Shown piece after piece: positions 14,356 to 46,149 of a stretch of 64,000 bases of DNA. Location: positions 186,001 through 250,000 of the IMG/VR virus record IMGVR_UViG_3300042540_001399; one strand, 5' to 3'. A model generated the notes under the pieces. It did no database searches, had not been told where the DNA came from, and saw only the letters and a list, made by a program, of their open reading frames with translations. The stretch's first letter is position 1. Every line of letters begins with the position of its first letter. The position numbers and the translations under genes were made by a program.

Positions 14356-14435
14356 ACGATAAAAAATAGTTATTGTATACTCATTTGACAAGTCAAAGTA
14401 TAGACATAACCAATAATTATTACTATTTATTTTAT

Positions 14436-32239: not shown

Positions 32240-32920
32240 ATGAAACACATCATTGTTACAAGATGTAAATTTGGAAATGACGAAAGTTTTCAAAAATATT
32301 TCCAAGTTATGAAAAAAACCTATATTCCATCTATAAATTCACAAACAAACAAGAACTTTTCAATTGCTCTTATAGTCAATCCCAAACACTATGATTTAAT
32401 TAGAAATGAAATAAACAAGGATATTGAAATTGTTAAATTTACAAGTCAAAATGAAGAATATAAAGATTTGGAAATAAGACAAAAAATAGATTTAATTCCA
32501 TTTTCAGATACAAAAAAAGATTACAGGGATTATGTAATTAAAAACAATATTACAATACAAACAAGACATGATTGTGATGATATAATGTTACCAAATTACG
32601 TCAATAAAATTCAAAAGCTTTATTCTGAAAATAAAAACAAACATGACGATTTTATTTTAAATTTTCACCCAACCAAACTTATTGTAGAATCAGGTAAAGA
32701 GTATACCCATAGTAGAGATTATAGTAGAGTATGTTCTATGTTTTCAACATTAGTACAAAAAAAAGTAAAACATGGGATCATGGATGTTATGCATGATCAT
32801 TTAGTAAGAATAACAAAAAATGTGATTTATATTCCTGAAACATTTGTTAAATTAGGAATACATGGTAATAACACAACATCTAAACTTAGGGAAACTGATA
32901 AATTAATAAGAAATTCATGA
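32240..32920 (+). CDS. putative glycosyltransferase (GT-A-like, rhamnosyltransferase-like)
   Basis: IPSINSQTNKNF and TRHDCDD motifs. Confidence 0.65.
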   Translation: MKHIIVTRCKFGNDESFQKYFQVMKKTYIPSINSQTNKNFSIALIVNPKHYDLIRNEINKDIEIVKFTSQNEEYKDLEIRQKIDLIPFSDTKKDYRDYVIKNNITIQTRHDCDDIMLPNYVNKIQKLYSENKNKHDDFILNFHPTKLIVESGKEYTHSRDYSRVCSMFSTLVQKKVKHGIMDVMHDHLVRITKNVIYIPETFVKLGIHGNNTTSKLRETDKLIRNS

Positions 32921-33669
32921 TCAAAAATTATACTTTAAAAGAAATTCAACAGGAAATAAAAAAAAACTACAAGTTTGGTGATACCATAGACATTTGTATT
33001 GTAACATTCAATAGATTGGAATACTTAAAAAAATGTGTTACAAGTATTATTGCATCCACATCAATTAAATTTCGAATTTTTGTAATTGATGATGGATCAA
33101 CTGACGGAACTAAGGAATGGTTACAGAAACAAAAAAAAAGAGGATTAATTTTTGATATAATACTAAATAAAAAAAATTTAGGAACGGCAACAAACTTTAA
33201 TCTTGTAATTGACAAGAGTGATAGTCCATTTTTTGTGATGTGTAATGACGATATGTATTTTCACAGATATTGGGACTTTGCAATTATGGATATTATAAAT
33301 AAATTTGACGATTGCGGTATAGTTTCATTTTATGATTACACAAGATATGGTCTTGACGAAGGTGTTTCAACTATTGACGATACAACAATTAAAGTTCCAA
33401 GAACTGGTTTGGGAGCTGCGGCGATTAACAGAGAACTATTCAATTTATCAGGAAAATTTATACTACCTGAAGGTGCAAAGATGGGATTTTTTGCGACCCC
33501 ATTTTGTTCAAGATGTTATAACACAAATATAAAAAGAAATACACATTATGCGACAGTACCCAATTATGTTACAAATATGGATGTGTCTTATTGTAAATTA
33601 AACGAGAATGACAATTTACAAGAATATGGGTTAATGAGGAAAAAAGAAAAACGAGGCTGGGGTAAATAA
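32917..33669 (+). CDS. glycosyltransferase family 2
   Basis: ICIVTFNR, VIDDGSTDGT, NLGTATNFN, CNDDMY. Confidence 0.9.
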   Translation: MIKNYTLKEIQQEIKKNYKFGDTIDICIVTFNRLEYLKKCVTSIIASTSIKFRIFVIDDGSTDGTKEWLQKQKKRGLIFDIILNKKNLGTATNFNLVIDKSDSPFFVMCNDDMYFHRYWDFAIMDIINKFDDCGIVSFYDYTRYGLDEGVSTIDDTTIKVPRTGLGAAAINRELFNLSGKFILPEGAKMGFFATPFCSRCYNTNIKRNTHYATVPNYVTNMDVSYCKLNENDNLQEYGLMRKKEKRGWGK

Positions 33670-33687
33670 ATTAAAAAAAAAATAATT

Positions 33688-34281
33688 ATGTTGTTAAACG
33701 AGCTGGCAAAAAAATATGGTACAGATAAAAAAATTCCAGATGGTATAAAATGTCAAAATGGTCTTTTAGGTCATGGATACACCGTACACTACGAAAAAAT
33801 ATTAAAAAACAGAAACATCAAAACTATGTTAGAAATAGGGGTTTCTTTTGGTGGATCTATTAAAATGTGGAATGAATACTTCAAAGGGAAATGTCACATT
33901 ACAGGAATTGATATTAACGAGAAAAGATTTAGAAAAAAAGACTTAGAAAATAAGAACATAAGGATCAAACTTGGTAGTCAAAACGATGTTAAATTTTTGA
34001 AGTCGTTATGTGATATTAAATATGATTTTATAGTTGATGATGGAAGTCATAAAAGTGGGGATCAAATAATATCCTTTAATAATTTATTTAACAATATGAA
34101 TAGTGGTGGTGTCTATATTATCGAAGATCTTCATGTTGCAAAAAAAACGGAACATATTTTTGAATCTATTAACACTAACGATGAATTTTATAAATTACAT
34201 TTAGATGAAACAGTAATAAAAAATATTAAATCTGTTGAATTTTATGAATCAAATAAATTGTGTGTTATTTATAGGAAATGA
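33688..34281 (+). CDS. class I SAM-dependent methyltransferase (sugar O-methyltransferase-like)
   Basis: MLEIGVSFGGS, GIDI, GSQND, IVDDGSH, GGVYIIEDL. Confidence 0.85.
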   Translation: MLLNELAKKYGTDKKIPDGIKCQNGLLGHGYTVHYEKILKNRNIKTMLEIGVSFGGSIKMWNEYFKGKCHITGIDINEKRFRKKDLENKNIRIKLGSQNDVKFLKSLCDIKYDFIVDDGSHKSGDQIISFNNLFNNMNSGGVYIIEDLHVAKKTEHIFESINTNDEFYKLHLDETVIKNIKSVEFYESNKLCVIYRK

Positions 34282-35339
34282 TATCAATAATAGTCACCGC
34301 ATATAATAATAAAAATTACATTCATGAATGTTTACAAAGCATTATAGAATCTTGTGGTGATGTAGATTTTGAAATTTTGTTGGGTATTGATAATTGTACA
34401 TCAACTTTGAAATCCGTGTTTCAAAAACACAAAAAATACAAAAATTTAAAAATACTCTTTTTCAAAAATAGAGTCGGAACTTACATTATAAGAAATAGTC
34501 TTGTGCCAATTTCAAAGTATGATAATATTTTATTTTTTGATTCTGATGACATCATGAAAAAAAATATGATTAATGATTTATTGTATAATATAAAAAAATA
34601 TGACTGTGTTAAACCTATGTTTTCTGGATTTAAAGATGGAGATGATATTACTTTACCCAAATTTAACACACAAAAAAACACATTTGGTGAAGGGGTATTT
34701 GCAATAAAGAAAAATGTTTTTAACGAAATGAACGGGTTTGAGCCATGGGTCTGTGCGGCAGATTCAGAGTTCAATTGGAGGTTGAGAATGAACAACAAAA
34801 CTTTTAAATACATAGAAAGGGTTTGTTTTTATTATAGAAGACATTCTACAAGTTTAACAACAAATCAAGAAACTGGAATGAGATCTAAATTGAGAATGAA
34901 ATATCATATTTTAACTAAAAACAAAAAAAATACTAAATCATTCTCACCATTGGATGAGATGGTTGTTTCGAAATTCATAGAAATAACTAACCATAATATT
35001 GATAATTTTTTAATAGACCAATTAAACCCTTCATTTGAAATACCTGAAGATAAAGGTCCCTTAGATGTTAACAATAATGAAAATGTAATTTCATTGATTT
35101 TTAATAAAACACCCAAGAAAGTTGTAGAACCAAATAAAAAACCAAAAGTTCAAATAGTTTCTAATAATCCAATAAATAATATATTAGTTAGAAAACCGAA
35201 AGTTGTTGATAAAGATAAAATCACTAAACAAAGACAAAATATTATTAACATAAAACAAAAAACTAATAGAGAAGTTTTTAACGAAATACACCCATCAAAA
35301 CCAAACCGAAGATTGGATCTTCCAAATATTAGGTTATAA
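34278..35339 (+). CDS. glycosyltransferase family 2 with basic C-terminal tail
   Basis: SIIVTAYN, GTYIIRN, FFDSDD, AADSEF. Confidence 0.85.
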   Translation: MISIIVTAYNNKNYIHECLQSIIESCGDVDFEILLGIDNCTSTLKSVFQKHKKYKNLKILFFKNRVGTYIIRNSLVPISKYDNILFFDSDDIMKKNMINDLLYNIKKYDCVKPMFSGFKDGDDITLPKFNTQKNTFGEGVFAIKKNVFNEMNGFEPWVCAADSEFNWRLRMNNKTFKYIERVCFYYRRHSTSLTTNQETGMRSKLRMKYHILTKNKKNTKSFSPLDEMVVSKFIEITNHNIDNFLIDQLNPSFEIPEDKGPLDVNNNENVISLIFNKTPKKVVEPNKKPKVQIVSNNPINNILVRKPKVVDKDKITKQRQNIINIKQKTNREVFNEIHPSKPNRRLDLPNIRL

Positions 35340-35381
35340 ATTTACATTTTGATTTTTATTTTTTATTTTTAAAATAAAAAA

Positions 35382-35561
35382 ATGTACGTTATAATCAAAC
35401 ATGTTAAAATGTCCGATAATAAAAAAAGGATACCTGTGATAATTCTTGATAGCCAAAATGAAATTTGGGAGTTTGAAGATTATGAAGAAGCTAAAAAAAT
35501 GAAAGATATTTTTGAAACTAATTCTGATTCTGGTCACATATATGAAGTAAAAAAAATATAA
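35382..35561 (+). CDS. small hypothetical protein (59 aa, not in ORF track)
   Basis: translated by hand: MYVIIKHVKM...IWEFEDYEEA...YEVKKI. Confidence 0.6.
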   Translation: MYVIIKHVKMSDNKKRIPVIILDSQNEIWEFEDYEEAKKMKDIFETNSDSGHIYEVKKI

Positions 35562-35562
35562 A

Positions 35563-35679
35563 ATGGAAGATATTCTATATGAAATACATAATGAATTTGT
35601 AAATTCTGAAGATTTTGACAAAATGTTATATGAAATGTTAATTTATTCAGAAAAGTATTGTCAATTAAAAAAAGATTAG
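35563..35679 (+). CDS. small hypothetical protein (38 aa)
   Basis: MEDILYEIHNEF...; 1 nt after upstream stop. Confidence 0.5.
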   Translation: MEDILYEIHNEFVNSEDFDKMLYEMLIYSEKYCQLKKD

Positions 35680-35687
35680 TATATTTG
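35680..35687 (+). promoter_or_regulatory. Bacteroidota sigma-A -7 promoter element upstream of leader 1
   Basis: TATATTTG with TTG at 35658-35660. Confidence 0.7.
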
Positions 35688-35732
35688 TAAAGGAATTAGA
35701 ACTTTTTAAAAAAACTGTATAATTATAATAAA

Positions 35733-35840
35733 ATGAAAAATACACTCAGACATATGGTCATTTGTAACAAGCCGAGCAATCAGTGGTCGTTTAGCTATAT
35801 TACGCGTAATCAGTCAAGGGTATTTTCACTTATGAGTTAA
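35733..35840 (+). CDS. attenuator leader peptide 1 (35 aa)
   Basis: MKNTLRHMVICNKPSNQWSFSYITRNQSRVFSLMS; codons match tRNA array 1. Confidence 0.85.
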   Translation: MKNTLRHMVICNKPSNQWSFSYITRNQSRVFSLMS

Positions 35841-35871
35841 AAACGTTTAACTAACATAATAGAAGGAATGT

Positions 35872-35908
35872 AAAACCCGAGACTTAAAAATCTCGGGTTT
35901 TTTGTTTT
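35872..35908 (+). terminator. attenuator terminator 1
   Basis: AAAACCCGAGA/TCTCGGGTTTT stem plus T tract ending 6 nt before tRNA-Thr. Confidence 0.9.
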
Positions 35909-35914
35909 ATATTA

Positions 35915-35986
35915 GCTCTGTAAGCATTGTTGGAGATGCGCCTGACTTGTAATCAGGAGAAATCAGTTCGATTCTGGTACGGAGCT
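35915..35986 (+). tRNA. tRNA-Thr(TGT)
   Basis: GCTCTGT/ACGGAGC; CCTGA-CTTGTAA-TCAGG; TTCGA. Confidence 0.9.
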
Positions 35987-35993
35987 CAAAAAG

Positions 35994-36002
35994 GTTCTTT
36001 GA
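35994..36002 (+). promoter_or_regulatory. boxA-like antitermination motif
   Basis: GTTCTTTGA; also at 39507, 39981 and 53468, all in RNA-gene leaders. Confidence 0.55.
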
Positions 36003-36019
36003 CATATTGGTCTTTATAG

Positions 36020-36090
36020 TGTTCCCTCGTCTAATGGCAGGACACGCGGTTTTGGTCCGTGGAATTGGGGTTCGAGTCCCTGGGGAACAA
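36020..36090 (+). tRNA. tRNA-Gln(TTG)
   Basis: TGTTCCC/GGGAACA; CGCGG-TTTTGGT-CCGTG. Confidence 0.92.
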
Positions 36091-36096
36091 CAATAA

Positions 36097-36180
36097 GGAA
36101 GAGTAATCACAACGGCTTGTGACTCCGTCTTGAAAACGGCAGGTACTGAAAGGTATGGGGATCGACACCTCACTCTTCCT
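36097..36180 (+). tRNA. tRNA-Ser(TGA)
   Basis: GGAAGAG/CTCTTCC; loop CTTGAAA; long variable arm; T loop ATCGACA. Confidence 0.88.
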
Positions 36181-36189
36181 CAACAATAA

Positions 36190-36262
36190 CTAGGTGTAGC
36201 TCAGATGGTAGAGCGGGTGGTTTGGGACCATCAGGCCGCAGGTTCGATCCCTGTCACTTAGA
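36190..36262 (+). tRNA. tRNA-Pro(TGG)
   Basis: CTAGGTG/CACTTAG; GGTGG-TTTGGGA-CCATC. Confidence 0.93.
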
Positions 36263-36266
36263 CAAC

Positions 36267-36342
36267 GTCTTCGTAGCTCAGTTGGTTTTAGAGCACCTCA
36301 CTTTTAATGAGGGGGTCACAGGTTCGAGCCCTGTCGGGGACA
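36267..36342 (+). tRNA. tRNA-Lys(TTT)
   Basis: GTCTTCG/CGGGGAC; CCTCA-CTTTTAA-TGAGG. Confidence 0.95.
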
Positions 36343-36384
36343 CAAAAATTTAGTAAAACTGAGCGATTTATACCAAAAAATGGT

Positions 36385-36392
36385 TATATTTG
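36385..36392 (+). promoter_or_regulatory. internal Bacteroidota -7 promoter element
   Basis: TATATTTG 17 nt before tRNA-Val. Confidence 0.6.
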
Positions 36393-36409
36393 CGTAAATA
36401 AACTAAAAA

Positions 36410-36483
36410 ACACTCTTAGCTCAGATGGTAGTAGCGGTTGTCTTACATACAACAGGTCACAGGTTCGATCCCTGTAGGGTGTA
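36410..36483 (+). tRNA. tRNA-Val(TAC)
   Basis: ACACTCT/AGGGTGT; GTTGT-CTTACAT-ACAAC. Confidence 0.92.
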
Positions 36484-36489
36484 CAATAA

Positions 36490-36575
36490 GGGAGAGTTGA
36501 GCAATTGGTTGGCTCAGCAGACTGTAAATCTGTCGTCGTAAGACCTTGGGGGTTCGAGTCCCTCCTCTCCCACCA
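36490..36575 (+). tRNA. tRNA-Tyr(GTA)
   Basis: GGGAGAG/CTCTCCC-A-CCA; loop CTGTAAA; variable arm. Confidence 0.95.
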
Positions 36576-36581
36576 CAAAAA

Positions 36582-36654
36582 GGACAAGTAGCTCAATTGG
36601 TAGAGCACCGCACTGTTAATGCGGGGGTTACAGGATCGTACCCTGTCTTGTCCG
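36582..36654 (+). tRNA. tRNA-Asn(GTT)
   Basis: GGACAAG/CTTGTCC; loop CTGTTAA; T loop ATCGTAC. Confidence 0.92.
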
Positions 36655-36660
36655 CAATAA

Positions 36661-36733
36661 GTTCACGTAGCTCAATTGGTAGAGCGCCGATCTGATACGT
36701 CGGAGGTAATGGGATCGTAACCCGTCGTGAACA
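36661..36733 (+). tRNA. tRNA-Ile(GAT)
   Basis: GTTCACG/CGTGAAC; loop CTGATAC; T loop ATCGTAA. Confidence 0.92.
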
Positions 36734-36737
36734 CTAC

Positions 36738-36821
36738 GGAAGATAAACCTTGATGGCGATAGGGTCCGCCTGCTAAGCGAGATGTACCTTTGGGTATTTG
36801 GTTCGATTCCAATGTCTTCCG
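36738..36821 (+). tRNA. tRNA-Ser(GCT)
   Basis: GGAAGA/TCTTCC; loop CTGCTAA; variable arm. Confidence 0.88.
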
Positions 36822-36827
36822 CAAAAC

Positions 36828-36897
36828 GCCGATAGGAAAGGTTTCCGATCCGGGCTCATATCCTGGATGTCATTGGGTTCGATACCCTTTATCGGTA
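36828..36897 (+). tRNA. atypical tRNA(CAT), probable elongator Met with shrunken D arm
   Basis: GCCGATA/TATCGGT; CCGGG-CTCATAT-CCTGG; D region only GGAA-AGGT-TTCC. Confidence 0.7.
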
Positions 36898-36903
36898 CTA
36901 CAT

Positions 36904-36977
36904 GGTGTATGTAGCTCAGTTGGCAGAGTGCTTGATTGTGGTTCAAGAGGTCATGGGTTCGACCCCCATCATACACA
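36904..36977 (+). tRNA. tRNA-His(GTG)
   Basis: encoded G-1, GTGTATG/CATACAC; loop TTGTGGT. Confidence 0.93.
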
Positions 36978-36978
36978 C

Positions 36979-37075
36979 AAATAGTTCACAACGGACAAGG
37001 CTTAGGCTCAAAGTGTGAGGTTATAATTCCTTATATTCCCTGAGGTGGGTGGCGAGTGGTTGACCAGAACTATTT
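36979..37075 (+). ncRNA. candidate structured RNA A
   Basis: 9-bp closing stem AAATAGTTC/GAACTATTT; no ORF. Confidence 0.45.
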
Positions 37076-37077
37076 AT

Positions 37078-37149
37078 ACCTTCGTAGCTTAATGGAAAAG
37101 CCTCAGAATACGAATCTGATGATTGGGAGTTCGACCCTCTCCGAAGGTA
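37078..37149 (+). tRNA. tRNA-Arg(ACG)
   Basis: ACCTTCG/CGAAGGT; TCAGA-ATACGAA-TCTGA. Confidence 0.92.
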
Positions 37150-37150
37150 C

Positions 37151-37283
37151 AAAAGATGATAGGAAGCGTAGAACAACGGACACGGAGGGGTGTTCGCAAG
37201 GGTACACACTAAGAATATATTTCTCTCTAAGGGTGTGTGAAGTCATACGATGGGATTCCTGATAAAGTTGTTCATCATCTTTT
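37151..37283 (+). ncRNA. candidate structured RNA B
   Basis: AAAAGATGAT/ATCATCTTTT and GAACAAC/GTTGTTC stems, internal hairpins. Confidence 0.55.
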
Positions 37284-37287
37284 ATTT

Positions 37288-37359
37288 ACCCCTTTCGTAT
37301 AATGGAAGTACAACACTCTTCTAAGGTGTCAGGTTGGAGTTCGAATCTCTGAGGGGGTA
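37288..37359 (+). tRNA. tRNA-Arg(TCT)
   Basis: ACCCCTT/AGGGGGT; ACACT-CTTCTAA-GGTGT. Confidence 0.9.
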
Positions 37360-37370
37360 CAACAAAATAC

Positions 37371-37441
37371 GCGTCTCTGGTGTAATGGTAGCATGATGGA
37401 TTCCAAACCCATCGGTCAGGGTTCGAGCCCTTGGGGACGCG
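37371..37441 (+). tRNA. tRNA-Trp(CCA)
   Basis: GCGTCTC/GGGACGC; ATGGA-TTCCAAA-CCCAT. Confidence 0.88.
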
Positions 37442-37449
37442 CTAATTAA

Positions 37450-37522
37450 GGACAGGTAGCTCAGTTGGTAGAGCGTTGGACTGAAGATCCAAGCGTCGGG
37501 GGTTCAATTCCCTCCCTGTCCA
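37450..37522 (+). tRNA. tRNA-Phe(GAA)
   Basis: GGACAGG/CCTGTCC; TTGGA-CTGAAGA-TCCAA. Confidence 0.95.
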
Positions 37523-37568
37523 CAAAATAAAATTTGTAATTTCTAACAAAAACCATTATCTTTGTATA

Positions 37569-38063
37569 ATGAAACATTTACCATACGAAGCTACAGGAAA
37601 GGCAATTAAGGGATATTCTGAATCAGAAACCGCTAGACGTGAAACAAATGACTGTGTGGTTAGAGCATTTGCATCGTCATTTGAAGTGTCTTATGATTAT
37701 GCCCATAAGTTTGTTGCGGATGAATTTGGTAGAAGACCAAGAAAAGGAACTTACGGAACTGTATCAAAACTTGTCAAAATGGCCGACAGTTTATTTAAAG
37801 TTAATGGTAAAAAAGTTTGTCCTGTTGGTATTAGACACAACGATAATATGTTAAGATCTTTGATGTATGATGTTAAAGTGAAAGGGGAAATTAAAAAAAG
37901 AAATATGACTGTTGGGACATTTGTTAAACAAAATCCAAAAGGAACTTTTTTTGTTTTGGTTAGACGACACGCATTTACAATCAAAGATGGTGTTGTAATT
38001 GGTAATTGGGATGACGCTATAAAAACAAAAAGACCAATGAGATGTGCCTTCAGAATTAAATAA
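37569..38063 (+). CDS. phage protein with NDCVVRA...HAF.I.DG motif (possible Cys-His-Asp peptidase fold)
   Basis: TATCTTTG -7 element at 37557-37564; Cys, His and Asp motif residues. Confidence 0.65.
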   Translation: MKHLPYEATGKAIKGYSESETARRETNDCVVRAFASSFEVSYDYAHKFVADEFGRRPRKGTYGTVSKLVKMADSLFKVNGKKVCPVGIRHNDNMLRSLMYDVKVKGEIKKRNMTVGTFVKQNPKGTFFVLVRRHAFTIKDGVVIGNWDDAIKTKRPMRCAFRIK

Positions 38064-38075
38064 AAAAATAAAAAA

Positions 38076-38531
38076 ATGAACCGTGTATTTAGAACGGTGG
38101 AAGGGGTTTCTATACCTGATATTGTAAAACATACTATTGATATTCTTAAAGAATGTCCATATGCTGAAATACACATTGGTACAGACTCACAAAACCATAG
38201 AAGATCAACCGTGTATGTTACGGCAATAGCATATAGATATGGTAACCGTGGGGTTCACTACATTTATCATAAACAAAAAATTAAAAAAATTCGTGATAAG
38301 TGGACAAGATTATGGAATGAAGCTGATTATTCGATCGAAGTTGCAAATTGGTTGACAAATAAAATAAAGGTTCAAGTTGAAATAGACCTTGATTACAATT
38401 ATCAAGAAAAGTACTTCAGTTCGAAGTTAGTTGGTCCAGCGGTTGGGTGGGTACAATCGTTAGGTTATAAGGCAAATATAAAACCAAATAATCAAATTGC
38501 AACAAGAGCGGCAGACCACCACTGTCGTTAA
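38076..38531 (+). CDS. RNase H-like YkuK family protein
   Basis: IGTDSQ, RLWNEA, DLDYN, IKP...AADH. Confidence 0.8.
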   Translation: MNRVFRTVEGVSIPDIVKHTIDILKECPYAEIHIGTDSQNHRRSTVYVTAIAYRYGNRGVHYIYHKQKIKKIRDKWTRLWNEADYSIEVANWLTNKIKVQVEIDLDYNYQEKYFSSKLVGPAVGWVQSLGYKANIKPNNQIATRAADHHCR

Positions 38532-38533
38532 TT

Positions 38534-38605
38534 GGTCGGGTGTCTGATGGGTAAAGTCTCGGTCTGCAAAACCGTAGTATGTGGGTTCGAATCCCACCCC
38601 GACCT
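38534..38605 (+). tRNA. tRNA-Cys(GCA)
   Basis: GGTCGGG/CCCGACC, U73; loop CTGCAAA. Confidence 0.9.
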
Positions 38606-38614
38606 CAACAAAAT

Positions 38615-38688
38615 GCCCCTATGGCGGAATTGGTATACGCGTGTGACTTAGGATCACAATCTTGCAGGTTCGAGTCCTGCTGGGGGTA
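38615..38688 (+). tRNA. tRNA-Leu(TAG), short variable loop
   Basis: GCCCCTA/TGGGGGT; TGTGA-CTTAGGA-TCACA; variable region ATCTT. Confidence 0.9.
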
Positions 38689-38727
38689 CAAATATTTTTA
38701 TTAGTATATTTATACTAAAAGATTATT

Positions 38728-39318
38728 ATGAAAAAGATTATAAGACTTACTGAATCAGATCTCGCTCGTATAGTTGGACGAGTTATTAAAGAAGAATATG
38801 ATGAAGATGATGAAGTGGAGGTTACACCTGAAATGATTATCAAAATGCTTATGGATAGTGCCGAATCAACCCCACAAGAAAATTATGATGACCTATATGA
38901 TTGGATGCAAGATGTATTTTCACCGGTTGAAAGTGAACTTGAGGATATGGGGTATGATATTGACGACCTTCGTATGACATATGATGATGTTATAATGAGT
39001 TTATGGGATGATAATGATGAAGATGATGAGGAATCATTATATGAATCAGATCTCGCTCGTATCGTTAAACAAGTTATTAGTGAATCTAAAAAGAATCTTA
39101 GTAAATCTGAAATATTGAAGATGTCAAAAGATGAGCTAAAAGATGTTTATGGTGAATTGGAAGTAAAAGGTGAGTATCACGGAAACAAAGGAACATTCCA
39201 CCACTTCAAAAGAACTGCAATCGGAGATATTGTCTGTAGTTTTAGAACTGATGACTCAACACCATCAGGATTGAAAAGAAATACTCAAGGAATTAAAGTC
39301 AAAAATTTAGATTTTTAA
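38728..39318 (+). CDS. protein with two LxESDL motifs
   Basis: MKKIIRLTESDLARIV and internal LYESDLARIV; ATATTTAT 38706-38713. Confidence 0.8.
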   Translation: MKKIIRLTESDLARIVGRVIKEEYDEDDEVEVTPEMIIKMLMDSAESTPQENYDDLYDWMQDVFSPVESELEDMGYDIDDLRMTYDDVIMSLWDDNDEDDEESLYESDLARIVKQVISESKKNLSKSEILKMSKDELKDVYGELEVKGEYHGNKGTFHHFKRTAIGDIVCSFRTDDSTPSGLKRNTQGIKVKNLDF

Positions 39319-39324
39319 TAAAAC

Positions 39325-39356
39325 TTGACACTTTTGAAATTATTAGTATATTTATA
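39325..39356 (+). promoter_or_regulatory. promoter upstream of leader 2
   Basis: TTGACA 39325-39330 and TATATTTATA 39347-39356. Confidence 0.6.
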
Positions 39357-39377
39357 AAACAAATTAAAAAACCGCAA

Positions 39378-39446
39378 ATGAAAAATTTACACATATTATT
39401 GATAGGGGGCGATTTAGCTGAAGCAACTTTCAAGAAGAGGGTGTAA
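39378..39446 (+). CDS. attenuator leader peptide 2 (22 aa)
   Basis: MKNLHILLIGGDLAEATFKKRV; codons match tRNA array 2. Confidence 0.85.
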   Translation: MKNLHILLIGGDLAEATFKKRV

Positions 39447-39469
39447 TATTTTATACATTTAATATTTAG

Positions 39470-39504
39470 AACCCCTCTTCCAAAAAAGAGGGGTTTTTTG
39501 TTTT
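39470..39504 (+). terminator. attenuator terminator 2
   Basis: AACCCCTCTT/AAGAGGGGTT plus T tract; boxA-like motif and tRNA-Leu follow. Confidence 0.9.
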
Positions 39505-39530
39505 AGGTTCTTTGAAATAATGGTAATAAT

Positions 39531-39615
39531 GGTTCGGTGGTGGAATTGGCAATACACGACAGGTTTAAGCCCTGTTTCCCATTGAGGATTGTGGGTTCGA
39601 GTCCCACCCGGACTA
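39531..39615 (+). tRNA. tRNA-Leu(TAA)
   Basis: GGTTCGG/CCGGACT; ACAGG-TTTAAGC-CCTGT; variable arm. Confidence 0.93.
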
Positions 39616-39620
39616 CAACA

Positions 39621-39716
39621 AAAACACATAAACTTTGGTTCCCACACAGCGGTGAGACGGGGTAAGTTATATACAATTTCTCGGGGCTGGAAGTAGAAAG
39701 CCAAAGAATGTGTTTT
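39621..39716 (+). ncRNA. candidate rod-like structured RNA C (6S-like?)
   Basis: AAAACACAT/ATGTGTTTT, CTTTGGTT/AGCCAAAG, CAGC/GCTG, GAGA/TCTC nested stems. Confidence 0.55.
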
Positions 39717-39777
39717 TTTAAAAAAAACTTTACAAAGTATTTGGTAGAACAAAATAAAAAATTTAATTTTGTAATAA

Positions 39778-39894
39778 ATGAAGACAATTGAAGTTACATA
39801 TCAAGAAATCAAAATGGCAACAAGGCCAAATGTGTATAAAAATAAAAAAAAATACACAAGAAAAGAAAAACATAAAAAAGATTTGGTAGATTAA
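39778..39894 (+). CDS. small basic protein, ArfA-like motif (38 aa)
   Basis: MKTIEVTYQEIKMATRPNVYKNKKKYTRKEKHKKDLVD; TAATTTTG at 39764-39771. Confidence 0.6.
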   Translation: MKTIEVTYQEIKMATRPNVYKNKKKYTRKEKHKKDLVD

Positions 39895-39905
39895 AAAAAA
39901 TCTTA

Positions 39906-39989
39906 TATCTTTGTTAAACAAATGACGGGGGTAGGAAAATTAGTGTTGTGGATTCCTACTCCCGTGTAAAAGGGAAGAAAGTTCTTTGA
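39906..39989 (+). promoter_or_regulatory. -7 promoter, 13-bp hairpin and boxA-like motif (rrn-leader-like)
   Basis: TATCTTTG 39906-39913; ACGGGGGTAGGAA/TTCCTACTCCCGT 39925-39965; GTTCTTTGA 39981-39989. Confidence 0.6.
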
Positions 39990-40000
39990 TTTAAAATATT

Positions 40001-40081
40001 GTGGTTGTAAGCAATGGGAAACTCGTTAAGTACATCAACCAGTTGGCTCAAGATGGTGAAACGAGAGTGTGAGTCAACTAC
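40001..40081 (+). ncRNA. candidate structured RNA D
   Basis: GTGGTTG/CAACTAC, CTCGTT/AACGAG, CATC/GATG nested stems. Confidence 0.45.
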
Positions 40082-40103
40082 TAAATCACAAAAAAAATGA
40101 AAT

Positions 40104-40228
40104 AGGCAAGTGGCGGAATTTATGGCAGACGCTTAGGTTGATTCCCCGTAAGAAGTCACCGAGATATAGCTGGGGATGTCTCTTGAAAAGGGAACTATAT
40201 CGTACAGGTTCGAATCCTGTTTTGCCTA
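40104..40228 (+). ncRNA. tRNA-like RNA with expanded anticodon/variable region and pseudoknot
   Basis: AGGCAAG/TTTGCCT acceptor, Leu-type D arm, ACAGG-TTCGAAT-CCTGT T arm, ~70-nt insert. Confidence 0.75.
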
Positions 40229-40233
40229 CACAT

Positions 40234-40306
40234 CGCGGGATGTGGAAGATGGTTATCCGCTCGGTCTCATAAGCCGAGATCGCCGGTTCGAGTCCGGCTC
40301 CCGCAA
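40234..40306 (+). tRNA. initiator tRNA-fMet(CAT)
   Basis: C1:A72 mismatch, CGCGGGA/TCCCGCA; loop CTCATAA. Confidence 0.9.
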
Positions 40307-40311
40307 CTTAA

Positions 40312-40371
40312 AGGGTGGATAGGTGGAAGGGCCTTTCCTGAAAGACGGTTTACTAGGCCCGTGTCCACCCT
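40312..40371 (+). ncRNA. candidate small structured RNA E
   Basis: AGGGTGGATA/TGTCCACCCT and GGGCCT/AGGCCC stems. Confidence 0.45.
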
Positions 40372-40382
40372 ACTGAATTTAT

Positions 40383-40463
40383 GCTGACGTACCAGTGGAT
40401 GCTTATATCATCTATACCTGTAGCGGTAAGTTGAAAACGTTGGTTCGAATCCAACCGTCAGTA
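40383..40463 (+). tRNA. D-armless tRNA-like RNA with TAT anticodon-like loop
   Basis: GCTGACG/CGTCAGT; GGATG-CTTATAT-CATCT; GTTGG-TTCGAAT-CCAAC; 7-nt D replacement. Confidence 0.6.
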
Positions 40464-40466
40464 CGG

Positions 40467-40610
40467 GAGTGTATGCAGTAGAGATCTGCTTATGATGGTA
40501 GGGACAAACACTTTAAAAAAGGGTCCCAAAGAGATAAGCCGTTTAGTAGTTTTGGTCGATAAAAACTAACGGATTTTATAGTAATGGTTCACCGATCGAA
40601 ACCAATACTC
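40467..40610 (+). ncRNA. candidate multibranched RNA F
   Basis: GAGTGT/ATACTC closing stem with four internal hairpins. Confidence 0.5.
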
Positions 40611-40681
40611 ATGATGTCAGAAAGGTTGATCACCTAATTCATGTAAACACCGTGACAACACCCCAAAGTTGTCACACTTTT

Positions 40682-40757
40682 GCGGGAGTAGCTCAATTGG
40701 TAGAGTTCCAGCCTTCCAAGCTGGCTGTTGAGGGTTCGAATCCCTTCTCCCGCTCCA
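40682..40757 (+). tRNA. tRNA-Gly(TCC)
   Basis: GCGGGAG/CTCCCGC-T-CCA; loop CTTCCAA. Confidence 0.95.
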
Positions 40758-40761
40758 AGTT

Positions 40762-40834
40762 GGGCCTGATGCCGACGGCAGGTCGAGTGGTTTGCAACCA
40801 CATCGTTTGGGTTCGATTCCCACAGTGTCCACCA
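40762..40834 (+). tRNA. atypical tRNA-Ala(TGC)
   Basis: G3:U70, A73, encoded CCA; GTGG-TTTGCAA-CCAC; bulged acceptor stem. Confidence 0.75.
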
Positions 40835-41007
40835 AATAAACAAAAAAACAAAGTAGTGATGAAGGAAGTTTTGTCAGGAACTTTAAAATCAAGAAAAGTT
40901 AATTTTGTTCAGATTGAAAATAACAGTGATTTTTTAAGTTCTTTAAGAAAAAAAATAAAAAAAAGAATAAGTAATTTAAAAAAAACAATTAAATTTGTAA
41001 AAAAAAG

Positions 41008-41087
41008 AAGATGAGTTTCCCTACATCCCGGATTAGTGAGAAACTTAAAGAGGGACAAAAGTGGTACACAAGTCCACGACTCATCTT
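41008..41087 (+). ncRNA. candidate structured RNA G
   Basis: AAGATGAGT/ACTCATCTT closing stem, two hairpins; TAAATTTG at 40990-40997. Confidence 0.45.
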
Positions 41088-41092
41088 AATTT

Positions 41093-41164
41093 GGTCGGTT
41101 CATCTAGGGGTCAGGATACAAGGTTTTCATCCTTGTCACACGGGTTCGAATCCCGTACCGACTA
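41093..41164 (+). tRNA. tRNA-Glu(TTC)
   Basis: GGTCGGT/ACCGACT; CAAGG-TTTTCAT-CCTTG. Confidence 0.93.
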
Positions 41165-41189
41165 CAAACCTGTCAAGGTAGTACAGGAA

Positions 41190-41305
41190 GGTCAGGAGTG
41201 TAATGAGGCACGGTGCCAAGTCCTAAAGACACCACGGTCCAAGAGCAATTTGGACGCGAGAAGTTATAAGGTTGCTCATTGTAGGTTCGAATCCTACCCT
41301 GACTT
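41190..41305 (+). ncRNA. tRNA-like RNA: acceptor plus T arm with novel 84-nt body
   Basis: GGTCAGG/CCTGACT; GTAGG-TTCGAAT-CCTAC; AATGAG/CTCATT and GTCCAA/TTGGAC stems. Confidence 0.7.
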
Positions 41306-41307
41306 CA

Positions 41308-41455
41308 CGGTTCGGATCATCACCGAATAGTATGCCCAATACGATGAGAAATGAGGTGATACCTCATATGGGACTTCTGATAGATAAAGGATCTATTCGG
41401 TTTGACTAACCGCGGGAAATATCAAAGAGGGTTGAAGAACTACGTACCCTCGAGT
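41308..41455 (+). ncRNA. candidate multi-hairpin RNA H
   Basis: CCGAATAG/CTATTCGG, ATGAGG/CCTCAT, CGGTT/AACCG, GAGGG/CCCTC. Confidence 0.4.
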
Positions 41456-41461
41456 CCAATT

Positions 41462-41536
41462 GGTCCATTGGTGTAGTGGCTAACATTCATCCCTGTCACG
41501 GATGAGCCGCGAGTTCGATTCTCGCATGGACCGCCA
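41462..41536 (+). tRNA. tRNA-Asp(GTC)
   Basis: GGTCCAT/ATGGACC-G-CCA; CATCC-CTGTCAC-GGATG. Confidence 0.95.
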
Positions 41537-41558
41537 AACTTATTAAAAATTAACCATT

Positions 41559-41828
41559 ATGAAAACTTTTCAAGACTTGGAATTTATAAAAATAAATGAT
41601 GCACCGTTTATGGTTGGTAAAAAATCCCGTATGCATTTTGATAATGGGTTCGGTGTATCTGTTGTATCACACTCTTATTCATATGGGGGTCGTGATGGTC
41701 TTTATGAAGTCGCGGTCCTTGACTCTGACGACAATCTTACCTACGATACTCCAATAACCAATGATGTAATGGGTTACTTAACTGAACAAGATGTTACTAA
41801 TGTCATGAAACAAGTTCAAGAGCTATAA
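41559..41828 (+). CDS. hypothetical phage protein
   Basis: 89 aa; FDNGFGVSVV...GGRDGLYEVAVL. Confidence 0.75.
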   Translation: MKTFQDLEFIKINDAPFMVGKKSRMHFDNGFGVSVVSHSYSYGGRDGLYEVAVLDSDDNLTYDTPITNDVMGYLTEQDVTNVMKQVQEL

Positions 41829-41913
41829 AAGATGACAGTTTTTTTATTCATAACATTTTTAACGACACTTTTTTTGTTGAGAAAAAAAAGAAAGTTTTAA
41901 GTAGATAAAAAAA

Positions 41914-41987
41914 GGTCTCTTAGCTCATTAGGTTAGAGCAACTGACTCATAATCAGTAGGTGGTTGGTTCGATCCCAACAGGGACCA
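41914..41987 (+). tRNA. tRNA(CAT), Ile2 (lysidine)-type
   Basis: GGTCTCT/AGGGACC; GACTCATAATC anticodon arm as in bacterial tRNA-Ile2 (recalled, not searched). Confidence 0.8.
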
Positions 41988-42032
41988 CAAAAGTATTGAA
42001 TATTTTAAAACAGAAATTATTATTTATAATAT

Positions 42033-42106
42033 GCACCCGTAGCTCAGCTGGATAGAGCAACTGCCTTCTAAGCAGTAGGTCAATGGTTCGAATCCATTCG
42101 GGTGTA
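42033..42106 (+). tRNA. tRNA-Arg(TCT), second copy
   Basis: GCACCCG/CGGGTGT; ACTGC-CTTCTAA-GCAGT. Confidence 0.95.
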
Positions 42107-42178
42107 CTTTTTTTTTATTTTTTTTTTGGAAATCAAAAAGTTTCCTGTATCTTTGTTGAAATAAATAACGATAAAGAT

Positions 42179-42928
42179 ATGACAACAGACATCACAGCAC
42201 AGGTAAAAAATTACAACGGTAAAAATTCATTCATTTTGAAAATGAAAGACGCAATTAGTAAATATGGATCACTTACTGTGAACCAAAAATCTGCAGTAGA
42301 AAAAATTTTTAAGAATGTTGATGAAGTAAAGTCAGTTGAAATGACTGAAGATCTTAAGAAAATTGCATCCTATGACGGGCCAAATTCTTTTGTTTTGGAT
42401 ATTAAAAATAAACTTACTCAATATGGTAAACTTTCTGAAAAACAAATTTCGGCTGGTTTGAAGCAAATCGACAAAGAACAAAACAAAACTGTTGTTCGTA
42501 AAGTTAATGTACCAGCAATTGGTGATACTATCAAAGTTGGTAGAAAAATTGGTCAACAACTTAAAGAAAAATACGGTCTTAATTTTAACCCAATTTTGTT
42601 GGACATCACAAAAGTTTTATCGTTTTCTGCTAAAGCTGTAAAATTTTCAGGTAAAATGACCGTAAAACGTGGTGACGTTTGTGTGTGTTGTGCAAAAACT
42701 CTTACCGATGAGTTTTCAATGTTAACTAAAATGGGTAAGACATGTGCGAAACACATGGGTGTTGAGTACATCACAGACGCAAGTGAGGCGGATAAATTCC
42801 GTGAAGAGTACCTACGTCGTGTTGAAGAAATTGGTGAAATGGAATTTTGGGTTCCAAATTCCCAAATTAAATCTTGGGAAGGAGACACTAATGTTCTTCA
42901 AAAAATGTCACACCTTTGGTTCAAATAA
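42179..42928 (+). CDS. protein with two N-terminal repeats and a Zn-finger (DUF6011-like)
   Basis: YNGKNSF...YGSLT..Q repeated; CVCCAKTLTD..S...MGKTCA. Confidence 0.7.
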   Translation: MTTDITAQVKNYNGKNSFILKMKDAISKYGSLTVNQKSAVEKIFKNVDEVKSVEMTEDLKKIASYDGPNSFVLDIKNKLTQYGKLSEKQISAGLKQIDKEQNKTVVRKVNVPAIGDTIKVGRKIGQQLKEKYGLNFNPILLDITKVLSFSAKAVKFSGKMTVKRGDVCVCCAKTLTDEFSMLTKMGKTCAKHMGVEYITDASEADKFREEYLRRVEEIGEMEFWVPNSQIKSWEGDTNVLQKMSHLWFK

Positions 42929-43023
42929 AAAAAAAGTGGGGTTTGTTCATCAATAGAACGGCCCCACTCATTTTGTATTTTTTTGTTAAAATTTTTTATT
43001 ATTTATATTATAAACATCATCAC

Positions 43024-43113
43024 ATGGACAACTCAATCATAGCGGCAATATTAACACCAATAGTTCTATTTGGTATTTTTCTTTATTTCTACTTTACAGA
43101 TAAAGAATACTAA
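43024..43113 (+). CDS. small membrane peptide (29 aa)
   Basis: MDNSIIAAILTPIVLFGIFLYFYFTDKEY after TATTTAT. Confidence 0.5.
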   Translation: MDNSIIAAILTPIVLFGIFLYFYFTDKEY

Positions 43114-43117
43114 AGTT

Positions 43118-43726
43118 TTATTTTATATCGGTAGACTCTAAAAGTGTGTAAGAAAATTTGTTACCATGGATTTTTGCCGCTTTTTTACATATTGACATAA
43201 ATTCATCAAAATCTTTAACTCTTTTAAATACCTGACATCCTTCGGACCAATTTTCAACCCAAGTCGAGTCCTGACCGGCTTTGTGTATGTTAATACCAAA
43301 CATTCCTGTGTCTGTTTTAGTTTCTTCAAAAATTAAATCTTTATTAGAATCTCTCCAAACTGTTACATTACCTAATCTTTGGCAAAGAGCGTCGTATTTC
43401 CCTTGATGTTTATCAATTTTCCAAACACCTCGATACTGGCCGGGTACTAATCTTGCAACGCCATTTTTGTTGTGAAATTCCATGACCCCTTTTTTACCAG
43501 GATCACATGTTGCCATCCAACAATGAAATTTCCAACTGCCTGTTTCGTCTTTATAAGTTATCGTTAGACAATCATCAAAAACATTTGTGACTTTGTCAGC
43601 AACACTTGGTTCATTATTTCTAACACCAACAATATTTACATCATAACCTTTGTTAGATGCGTCGTCAAACCATTTAAAATTTTTTGATTTGACAGTAGTT
43701 TCTATTTGTTCTTTTGTATAACACAT
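43118..43726 (-). CDS. YkuD/L,D-transpeptidase-like cell-wall enzyme
   Basis: GINIH...NWSEGCQVF His/Cys motif. Confidence 0.65.
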   Translation of the reverse strand: MCYTKEQIETTVKSKNFKWFDDASNKGYDVNIVGVRNNEPSVADKVTNVFDDCLTITYKDETGSWKFHCWMATCDPGKKGVMEFHNKNGVARLVPGQYRGVWKIDKHQGKYDALCQRLGNVTVWRDSNKDLIFEETKTDTGMFGINIHKAGQDSTWVENWSEGCQVFKRVKDFDEFMSICKKAAKIHGNKFSYTLLESTDIK

Positions 43727-43791
43727 AATATATTTTTTTTTATAAATATAAAGTTTTTCAAAAAGTAAATAGTTTGATAATATTTATTAAT

Positions 43792-45549: not shown

Positions 45550-46148
45550 AAAAAATTTTTTTATTATTCAACTTTTTATTTATAACTTTTTTGTTACACG
45601 GACAAAATTCTTACCCAATCCAAACAATTTTAAAGGGTGATTCAGTTGTAATTTATACCACAGATCAATCAAATGATTTGAATTTGACAATAGAAAATCA
45701 AAGATTCTTATCATCTACTTATAAAACTAAACTTGAAGACTATAGTAAAAAAATTGACAGTTTAGAAAAAAACATAAATAATAAACAGATGGTAATAGAT
45801 AGTTTATATTTAACACATAAAAATCAAGACAGTTTACAACAAAGATTATACGTACTTGAAAATTGGTTAATAAAAGCATCAATTGACAACTCTTACATTT
45901 ATATGTCATGGCCAGATCATACTATTAAATTTGTGGATTTAACATTATATACAGTTCATTGTAGTATGCAAAATGGTACTTTAAGAATGATTAGAAGAGG
46001 ACCAAATGATGAATTTGAAATTTGGAAAGGATTAAATTATATTAGAAAAGAAAGTCCAGAAATTGGTTGGGAAATGAAATATACTGAAGACGAACGACCA
46101 ATAGTAAAAAATCTACCAATAAACATAAAAATTAACGACTACAAATAA
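45546..46148 (+). CDS. exported protein with coiled coil
   Basis: signal peptide MKKIFLLFNFLFITFLLHG. Confidence 0.75.
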   Translation: MKKIFLLFNFLFITFLLHGQNSYPIQTILKGDSVVIYTTDQSNDLNLTIENQRFLSSTYKTKLEDYSKKIDSLEKNINNKQMVIDSLYLTHKNQDSLQQRLYVLENWLIKASIDNSYIYMSWPDHTIKFVDLTLYTVHCSMQNGTLRMIRRGPNDEFEIWKGLNYIRKESPEIGWEMKYTEDERPIVKNLPINIKINDYK

Positions 46149-46149
46149 G

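Follow-up and report, generated by a model that had tools for sequence, protein, structure and literature searches.

What controls the two clusters of tRNA genes carried by a giant phage, and why does a short open reading frame followed by a transcription stop signal stand in front of each? The stretch of DNA analysed here (the window) comprises 64,000 nucleotides of the IMG/VR record IMGVR_UViG_3300042540_001399, positions 186,001 to 250,000, and belongs to a phage of roughly 290 kb, probably of a Bacteroidota host, which is known only from metagenomes. The original prediction held that the frame in front of the first array is an index of the codons read by the 18 tRNAs behind it, and that it sits in a ribosome-stalling attenuator which switches on the array when any of these tRNAs is depleted. 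The observation is confirmed, every checkable element of the interpretation held, and comparison with related phages strengthens it. The phage therefore probably makes these tRNAs only when ribosomes run short of them, although the arrays probably also have internal promoters. No published description of this kind of control was found.

Architecture of the two modules

All features described here lie on the + strand. At 35658-35908 a conserved promoter, a 35-codon ATG reading frame (35733-35840) and a strong intrinsic terminator follow each other, and tRNA-Thr starts 7 nt later, leaving no room for another promoter. In the four relatives checked, tRNA-Thr follows the terminator by 12-15 nt. 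The promoter can be read as TTGTCA-16-TATATT (35658-35685) or, over 35658-35687, as TTG(TCA), 19 nt and TATATTTG, thereby fitting both the sigma-70 TTGACA-16-TATAAT and the Bacteroidota TTG-N19-TAnnTTTG form; it is conserved in 32 variants while the sequence further upstream is not. A second, ATG-proximal -10-like element (TGTATAATTATAAT at 35716-35728; TATATTTATAAC in relatives) corresponds to a motif seen 10-25 nt before many genes of this phage. The start context of the frame (ATGAAA, A/T-rich, no Shine-Dalgarno sequence) is also the same as in the genes of this phage. The terminator (35872-35908) consists of an 11-bp stem with 5 GC pairs at 35872-35901 followed by TTGTTTT, with a folding energy of -15.1 kcal/mol and 4 compensatory pairs among the variants. 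It is one of only three terminator-like sites found in 33000-44000, of which the second (39468-39497) lies in front of array 2 and the third is nested inside that one.

Array 1 (35915-38689) contains, in order, Thr-TGT, Gln-TTG, Ser-TGA, Pro-TGG, Lys-TTT, Val-TAC, Tyr-GTA, Asn-GTT, Ile-GAT, Ser-GCT, Met-CAT, His-GTG, Arg-ACG, Arg-TCT, Trp-CCA, Phe-GAA, two protein genes, Cys-GCA and Leu-TAG. Fifteen of these tRNAs are called by Rfam and by ARAGORN at default settings, whereas Ser-TGA (36097-36181), Ser-GCT (36738-36822) and Met-CAT (36827-36898) appear only at 90% of ARAGORN's threshold. As these three recur at the same positions with the same anticodons in relatives, the predicted list of 18 is right, with three low-scoring members. 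The two protein genes are the ORF at 37569-38063 (phrog_3754), which is preceded by a promoter-like site at 37534-37564, and an RNaseH-like ORF at 38076-38531 (PF04308). A further TATATTTG box (36385-36392) lies in a conserved spacer 18 nt before tRNA-Val and is a possible internal promoter. These conserved boxes could feed distal tRNAs independently, so that the attenuator is probably not the only control.

The same layout precedes array 2, in a module at 39325-39504. Promoter 2 (39325-39354) consists of TTGACA followed by TATATTTA (TTG-N19-TAnnTTTA), matches 11 of 12 positions and is near-invariant in 29 variants. It is followed by a 22-codon leader (39378-39446) and an intrinsic terminator (39468-39504). 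Array 2 (39531-42107) holds Leu-TAA, a tRNA-like gene with an insert (40104-40228), an initiator-like CAT (40234-40307), Ile-TAT (40383-40464; atypical and miscalled Pyl by ARAGORN), Gly-TCC, Ala-TGC (40762-40830, at a relaxed threshold), Glu-TTC, Asp-GTC, Met-CAT and Arg-TCT, with conserved spacers between them.

Codon content of the two leaders

Leader 1 uses only codon classes served by the 18 tRNAs of array 1, and codons 2-25 alone, which form the sensing part, cover all 18. The peptide uses 16 amino acids and has no Ala, Asp, Glu or Gly; its Leu codons are only ctc and ctt and its Ile codons only att. The term "codon-for-codon index" is appropriate for the set of codons, but not for their order. 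Based on the codon usage of 64 long ORFs of the window, array-1 classes make up 67.6% of codons, which gives a probability of 1.7e-6 for 34 of 34 codons falling inside them; given this, the probability of covering all 18 classes is 8.9e-4 for 34 codons and 6.5e-6 for 24 codons. In addition, the choice within classes in codons 2-25 is 4.7 sd rarer than genome usage.

Leader 2 holds what leader 1 lacks, namely Gly, Asp, Ala, Glu, Leu-UUR and Ile-AUA, and array 2 carries the matching tRNAs. Its codons 4-16 are tta cac ata tta ttg ata ggg ggc gat tta gct gaa gca. Array-2-only codons account for 0 of 34 codons in leader 1 and 12 of 21 in leader 2 (Fisher p = 6.7e-7). Leader 2 also carries conserved Lys, Asn, His, Thr, Phe and Val codons for which array 2 of this window has no tRNA.

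About 30 sequence variants of each leader exist in related IMG/VR jumbo-phage contigs. The frame is open in all 31 DNA variants of leader 1 and all 23 of leader 2, while the other two frames are never open; indels are in frame, with ORF lengths of 105/108/111 nt and 69/75 nt. The amino-acid sequence of leader 1 is not conserved, as the entropy is 0.58/0.60/0.60 at codon positions 1/2/3, but its codon classes are: of 68 minor states in the sensing columns, 3 are array-2 classes, against 22 (32%) expected (p = 1.7e-8). Every variant covers 16-18 classes, only one Arg isoacceptor is ever missing, and array-2-class codons are mostly confined to positions -6 to -9 from the stop, inside the antiterminator strand. 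Synonymous choice splits between the leaders as the Leu-TAG/Leu-TAA and Ile-GAT/Ile-TAT split predicts, with Leu 58 CTN to 2 TTR and Ile 53 ATY to 1 ATA in leader 1, but 1 to 81 and 13 to 41, respectively, in leader 2; genome usage is 70% TTR and 40% ATA. All 23 variants of leader 2 carry Leu-TTR, Ile-ATA, Gly, Ala, Glu and Asp, with Asp moving from column 13 to column 17 between subgroups.

In relatives, arrays have lost (or ARAGORN misses) up to 10 tRNAs while the leader keeps the matching codons, and there is no short-term covariation. Deep covariation is seen in the distant lineage L087, where Leu-TAG and Thr-TGT lie in the second array: its leader has two CTT and three Thr codons, and the first leader has no CTN. 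However, leader A of L087 has a Gly codon at position 6 and lacks CGN although Arg-ACG is in its array, and a sister lineage (L090-L094) has similar arrays without leaders.

Alternative RNA structures and the inferred mechanism

In the full-length fold of leader 1, the start-codon region (segment 1, UGAAAAAUAC..., 35734-35751) pairs with the last codons of the leader (segment 2, AGTCAAGGGTATTTTCAC, 35812-35829). UGAAAA and UUUUCA pair in nearly all of the 33 variants (29-33 per pair), but both sides are almost invariant and hence provide no evidence of covariation. Segment 2 can alternatively pair with the 5' arm of the terminator (segment 3, 35872-35884). The pairing of AGTC/GGGT (35812-35821) with ACCC/GACT (35875-35884), as originally predicted, is the minimum-energy fold once the 3' arm of the terminator is left out, but its duplex energy of -8.6 kcal/mol is no better than that of shuffled leaders (-6.7 +/- 2.6). 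This antiterminator is weak in the window, is weak in one subgroup (-5 to -7 kcal/mol) and shows no formal covariation, whereas in divergent leader-1 variants it is 14-16 bp long, with -18 to -21 kcal/mol in five divergent variants. A hairpin holding the stop codon (35830-35859; core AGTTAAA/TTTAACT) lies in the loop between segments 2 and 3 and covaries, with 78% of cells paired, 5 pairs with changes on both sides and 1 of 500 shuffles as good.

The evidence is stronger for leader 2, in which the antiterminator strand GAAGAGGG (39434-39441) forms the last codons before the stop, where it would be covered by a ribosome at the stop codon, and its partner CCCTCTTC (39473-39480) lies in terminator 2. 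Here, 96.6% of cells are paired, 4 pairs show changes on both sides and slid controls are near zero; cognate leader-arm pairs beat permuted pairs in all but 4 of 5000 permutations. L087 has both modules with different helix sequences, TGGTTCGG/CCGAACCA and GGTGGGT/ACCCACC.

Taken from sequence alone and without expression data, the likely explanation is ribosome-mediated transcription attenuation at the head of each array. In this inferred mechanism, a ribosome which decodes every codon quickly reaches the end of the leader and covers the antiterminator strand, so that the terminator forms and transcription stops before the tRNAs. If any one tRNA species is scarce or uncharged, the ribosome stalls upstream, the antiterminator forms and RNA polymerase reads into the array. 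Because the array supplies the limiting decoders the loop closes, and transcription would continue until all species of the array are sufficient, which amounts to an OR gate for switching on and an AND gate for switching off. Rare synonymous codons in the leader (CCG, TCG, ACG, CAG, AGC, CTC) would make it sensitive, although one codon per tRNA is a weaker stall signal than the codon runs of classical leaders. The signal could be a codon-usage mismatch between the 31% GC phage and its host, decay of host tRNA during infection, amino-acid starvation or tRNA-cleaving defences; the role against anticodon nucleases put forward in the original prediction is speculation.

Rival readings and related systems

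The rival that survives best, though it remains unlikely, is that the attenuator reports general translation capacity, that is, whether a ribosome follows the polymerase at all or at what overall speed, with the broad codon content being incidental or only avoiding codons of the other array for some other reason. This would be consistent with single codons per class, with the codons in leader 2 that are foreign to its array, and with leaders that are unchanged when arrays shrink. It does not explain the complementary Leu and Ile split, the exclusion of array-2 classes from the replacements, the full coverage of 18 classes or the Thr and Leu-CTN shift in L087.

It is more doubtful that the two frames encode small proteins with their own function, with the terminators being leaky gene ends and the tRNAs made by constitutive read-through and from internal promoters. 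The ORFs are conserved, have normal start contexts, and internal promoter-like boxes exist. On the other hand, leader 1 shows no excess conservation at codon positions 1 and 2 over position 3, peptide order is shuffled between subgroups while the amino-acid set is kept, the last codons covary with the terminator arm in leader 2, codons are strongly biased towards rare ones, and the peptides are too short for a fold.

A reversed logic, in which leader translation opens the hairpin between the start codon and segment 2 so that the antiterminator can form and the arrays are expressed when translation is active, draws on the full-length fold of leader 1 with its invariant UUUUCA, but is improbable, as in leader 2 and in L087 the antiterminator strand lies in the last three codons, where a terminating ribosome covers it, and as codon-class matching is left unexplained. 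Least likely of all is an untranslated RNA-only element, or a terminator of the upstream glycosyltransferase genes, with a chance open frame: a Shine-Dalgarno sequence is absent, but the phage's genes lack it too, the frame is open in 54 of 54 variants and the other frames in none, indels are in frame, and a conserved promoter sits directly upstream.

Large phage tRNA sets have been proposed to compensate codon usage or to replace host tRNAs cut by defence nucleases (PMC10264068, PMC11464382), and their benefit likewise depends on the state of the host tRNA pool. Those studies concern what the tRNAs do, and do not describe a codon-matched leader peptide or an attenuator that controls their transcription. 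T-box riboswitches also sense the state of a specific tRNA and control read-through of a terminator through an antiterminator, but they bind uncharged tRNA directly through a specifier codon, need no ribosome or ORF and regulate synthetase and amino-acid genes; no T-box match was found here. In the pheST operon of E. coli, attenuation by the pheM leader appears to control a component of the decoding machinery as well, but in this case a single synthetase in response to one amino acid, with no tRNA gene being regulated.

The leader-peptide attenuators of amino-acid operons in Enterobacteria (trpL, hisL, leuL, thrL, ilvL, pheL), and possibly the predicted Bacteroid-trp leader of Bacteroidota, share the short translated ORF followed by an intrinsic terminator, the antiterminator helix which uses the 5' arm of the terminator and is masked by a ribosome at the end of the ORF, and regulatory codons cognate to what the operon supplies. 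Rare codons are used for sensitivity there too, as seems to be the case for CUA in leuL, and thrL and ilvL already sense two or three amino acids. No Rfam leader family matches the phage element. Here, the regulated product is the set of tRNAs instead of biosynthetic enzymes, the leader has one or two codons for each of up to 18 decoders instead of a run for one to three amino acids, the element is in a phage, and two leaders in one genome divide the genetic code between them.

Leader modules in front of the two tRNA arrays

The window has a GC content of 31% and matches IMG/VR contigs of 274-291 kb at 100% identity, while no close relative exists among GenBank phages; a search of GenBank phages with the region 35300-39600 gave no match with megablast and only isolated tRNA similarities with blastn. 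The 35-codon ORF of the original prediction lies at 35733-35840 on the plus strand. It is preceded by a promoter, TTGTCA-16-TATATT, at 35658-35685 and followed by an 11-bp GC-rich hairpin at 35872-35901 with a T-tail to 35908, after which tRNA-Thr starts at 35915. A run of glycosyltransferase and methyltransferase genes (32240-35339; PF11316, PF00535 twice, and a methyltransferase) lies directly upstream of this leader. Default ARAGORN and Rfam find 15 tRNAs up to 38689, and the other three, Ser-TGA, Ser-GCT and Met-CAT, appear only at 90% of the ARAGORN threshold but recur at the same positions in relatives. The list of 18 tRNAs in the original prediction is correct, with three low-scoring members. 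Several tRNAs (36097-36181, 36582-36655 and 36661-36734) have GATCG in place of the usual GTTCG in the T arm, which lowers detection scores and may reflect an unusual T-loop.

Only three terminator-like sites exist in 33000-44000, namely the one described, a second at 39468-39497 and a third nested inside the second. The site at 39468 follows a near-consensus promoter (39325-39352, 11 of 12 matches) and a 22-codon ORF at 39378-39446, and it precedes tRNA-Leu-TAA at 39531. The core of this second leader holds what leader 1 lacks: Gly, Asp, Ala, Glu, Leu as TTR and Ile as ATA. The two terminator hairpins, of -15.1 and -16.9 kcal/mol, are followed by U-tracts, and the first tRNA starts 7 nt and 27 nt, respectively, after the two tails. 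In most relatives and in the distant locus L061 a conserved motif, GTTCTTTGACATATTGGT (GGTTCTTTGAAATAATGGT in the window), lies between terminator 2 and the first tRNA (39505-39530); it could be a second promoter or a processing signal, and if it is a promoter it would bypass attenuator 2.

Array 2 carries Leu-TAA, an initiator-like CAT tRNA, Ile-TAT, Gly-TCC, Ala-TGC, Glu-TTC, Asp-GTC, a second CAT tRNA and Arg-TCT. The Ile-TAT gene (40383-40464) was miscalled Pyl-CTA by ARAGORN and is assigned by its conserved CTTATAT anticodon loop; it has no normal D-loop and a long variable arm, while the relatives L011 and L047 have a canonical 74-nt version. A further tRNA-like gene at 40104-40228 (Rfam tRNA 27.2 bits, just under threshold) has intact acceptor, D and T arms, the D arm being of the Leu type, but a roughly 62-nt insert where the anticodon arm should be; the same position holds Leu-CAA in locus L084 and Phe-GAA in loci L011, L048 and L077. 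Spacers between the tRNAs (36979-37077, 37151-37287, 39860-40100 and 41190-41310) are conserved non-tRNA elements in 20-60 related loci with 70-98% identity. The one at 37151-37287 has an ACACAC/GTGTGT hairpin and is recognisable even in L061 (positions 190-330 of that locus). No Rfam family matches these spacers, which may be unknown small RNAs or processing elements. Two protein genes, phrog_3754 of unknown function and a PF04308 RNaseH-like protein, are embedded in array 1 (37569-38531) and conserved there across the family, and a role in tRNA processing or repair is conceivable.

The genes of the phage lack Shine-Dalgarno motifs (1 of 50) and often have a TATATTTA-like box 10-25 nt before the ATG, while both leader promoters fit TTG-N19-TAnnTTT(G/A). 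An 839-aa protein (14373-16892) carries SprB repeats, a PKD-like domain and a CHU_C type IX secretion sorting domain, which suggests a Bacteroidota host and possibly the export of a phage-encoded surface protein. Together, these features point to a Bacteroidota host, although this is inference. Two adjacent ORFs at 43774-47604 have histidine-kinase-type ATPase domains, and one of them also has GAF and PAS sensor domains, which is unusual cargo for a phage.

Codon content of the leaders and its conservation

Codon usage was taken from 64 long ORFs of the window (17,618 codons), in which the 18 classes of array 1 make up 67.6% of codons. The probability that 34 codons all fall inside these classes is 1.7e-6, and the probability that all 18 classes are covered, given that the codons are inside, is 8.9e-4 for 34 codons and 6.5e-6 for codons 2-25. 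Codons that belong only to array 2 are 0 of 34 in leader 1 and 12 of 21 in leader 2 (Fisher p = 6.7e-7), with leader 2 carrying all six array-2-only classes. Taken alone, leader 2 is only moderately unusual (p = 0.025 for covering its seven classes and 0.017 for 12 or more such codons). It also has conserved Lys, Asn, His, Thr, Phe and Val codons that array 2 of this window does not serve, although relatives do carry Phe, Thr or His tRNAs there.

Proteins embedded in array 1 retrieved 86 loci from IMG/VR, and BLAST found both leader regions in about 55 of them, with nucleotide identity down to about 70%. There are 31 distinct DNA variants of leader 1 and 23 of leader 2, all of which are open in frame, while the other two frames are never open, and ORF lengths differ only by whole codons. 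The start context of the leaders matches that of the phage's genes. Variability in leader 1 is equal at the three codon positions (0.58/0.60/0.60), so the amino-acid sequence itself is not conserved. By contrast, codon class is conserved, as every variant covers 16-18 of the 18 classes and only one of the two Arg isoacceptors is ever missing. Between subgroups the same residues sit at different positions, for example MKNTLRHMVICNKPSNQWSF... against MKTQMKHMNFNTPCQNWVKS... Of 68 minor column states in the sensing part, 3 belong to array-2 classes against 22 expected (p = 1.7e-8). Ala, Asp and Gly do occur in some variants, but mostly at positions -6 to -9 from the stop, inside the RNA strand that may pair with the terminator.

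Synonymous choice differs between the two leaders, with Leu at 58 CTN to 2 TTR and Ile at 53 ATY to 1 ATA in leader 1, and Leu at 1 CTN to 81 TTR and Ile at 13 ATY to 41 ATA in leader 2, while the genome uses 70% TTR and 40% ATA. This split follows Leu-TAG and Ile-GAT in array 1 against Leu-TAA and Ile-TAT in array 2. Within classes, leader 1 prefers codons that are rare in the phage (CCG, TCG, ACG, CAG, AGC and CTC), the bias being 4.7 sd below expectation for codons 2-25. A purely compositional explanation was rejected because Val (GTN) is common in leader 1 and the Leu and Ile choices run against the genome bias.

Comparison of leader codons with array content among close relatives gave no event-level covariation, as arrays have shrunk while leaders are unchanged, although some of this may be due to tRNAs missed by ARAGORN. 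The deeper lineage L087 shares only 58% identity in the embedded RNaseH-like protein, yet it has both modules. Its first leader ends in TGGTTCGG, complementary to its terminator arm, and precedes 13 tRNAs, with 12 of those classes occurring in the leader; its second leader ends in GGTGGGT, complementary to ACCCACC. In this lineage Leu-TAG and Thr-TGT lie in the second array, and the second leader has two CTT and three Thr codons, while the first has no CTN. These are two events in the predicted direction, which are suggestive but not proof. A sister lineage (L090-L094) has no leader modules, and its tRNAs have their own promoter-like motif. Sister-clade loci with small arrays (L022, L025, L058, L069 and L078) have homologous terminators, but the first tRNA is 60-250 nt away and no convincing leader ORF is present. 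An exact-pattern scan of genome contigs for the conserved start of leader 2 gave only chance hits, one of them a signal peptide in a Bacteroidetes MAG with no tRNAs nearby.

Alternative RNA structures

With the 3' arm of terminator 2 left out, GAAGAGGG (39434-39441) pairs with CCCTCTTC (39473-39480). Across 29 variants, 96.6% of cells are paired and four pairs show changes on both sides, with one pair being G-C in 14 variants and U-A in 13, while slid controls give essentially no such changes. Cognate leader-arm duplexes beat permuted ones in all but 4 of 5000 permutations. This strand lies in the last three codons, 3-10 nt before the stop codon, so a ribosome at the stop codon would cover it.

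For leader 1, the original prediction proposed that the last codons pair with the 5' arm of the terminator. This pairing is the minimum-energy fold of the truncated RNA, but it is weak, with an energy of -8.6 kcal/mol against -6.7 +/- 2.6 for shuffles. Neither the alignment-wide structure count nor the comparison of cognate and foreign duplexes gave a covariation signal for it, and RNAalifold returned only the terminator. However, five divergent variants have a 14-16 bp helix at the homologous place (-18 to -21 kcal/mol). In the full-length fold, the start region UGAAAA pairs with the invariant UUUUCA of the same strand, which resembles the 1:2 helix of classical attenuators, but the pairs are almost invariant and give no evidence from covariation. 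A hairpin that holds the stop codon does covary, and so does terminator 1, in which compensatory pairs are present.

The attenuators are probably not the sole input to the arrays. A conserved TAnnTTTG box precedes tRNA-Val (36385) and another site precedes ORF 37569, and distal tRNAs may therefore have independent input. On the other hand, no terminator lies between 35908 and 39468, so read-through from leader 1 could still span the whole array.

Proposed control of tRNA supply and comparison with known attenuators

The most far-reaching interpretation, which in the absence of expression data is considered only somewhat more likely than not, is that the phage runs a closed-loop controller of tRNA supply, in which two complementary leader peptides divide the genetic code and each gates the tRNA array that decodes its own codons. 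A shortage of any single decoder, from whatever cause, including tRNA-cleaving host defences, would switch on resupply, and transcription would stop only when every species of that array is sufficient. This would be the first cis-acting feedback on tRNA gene transcription that reads decoding capacity codon by codon, and it would also explain how large phages keep 25-30 tRNA genes in balance with demand. It bears on the long-running question of whether phage tRNAs serve codon compensation or counter-defence, as the leader would state which shortages the phage has evolved to respond to and so give a direct experimental handle. The 55-110 nt leader modules could also serve as compact reporters of the availability of individual tRNAs. 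Current work on phage tRNAs concerns their role and not their control (PMC10264068, PMC11464382), and no description of a leader peptide or attenuator in front of tRNA genes was found in a full-text literature search that did not cover most subscription journals.

A T-box riboswitch is not supported, as no T-box or other cis-regulatory Rfam family matched in 34000-44000 at E <= 1, with the only hit in the leader region being a noise match to AgrB (E = 0.73). The anatomy instead agrees with the defining features of leader-peptide attenuation: for leader 2 every feature that can be tested from sequence is present, while for leader 1 the antiterminator remains uncertain in this window. Attenuation by leader peptides is a textbook mechanism, but it is known for amino-acid supply and senses one to three amino acids. 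What differs here from known cases is that the regulated product would be the tRNAs themselves, that up to 18 decoders are sampled once or twice each, that two complementary leaders exist in one genome, and that the element is in a phage.
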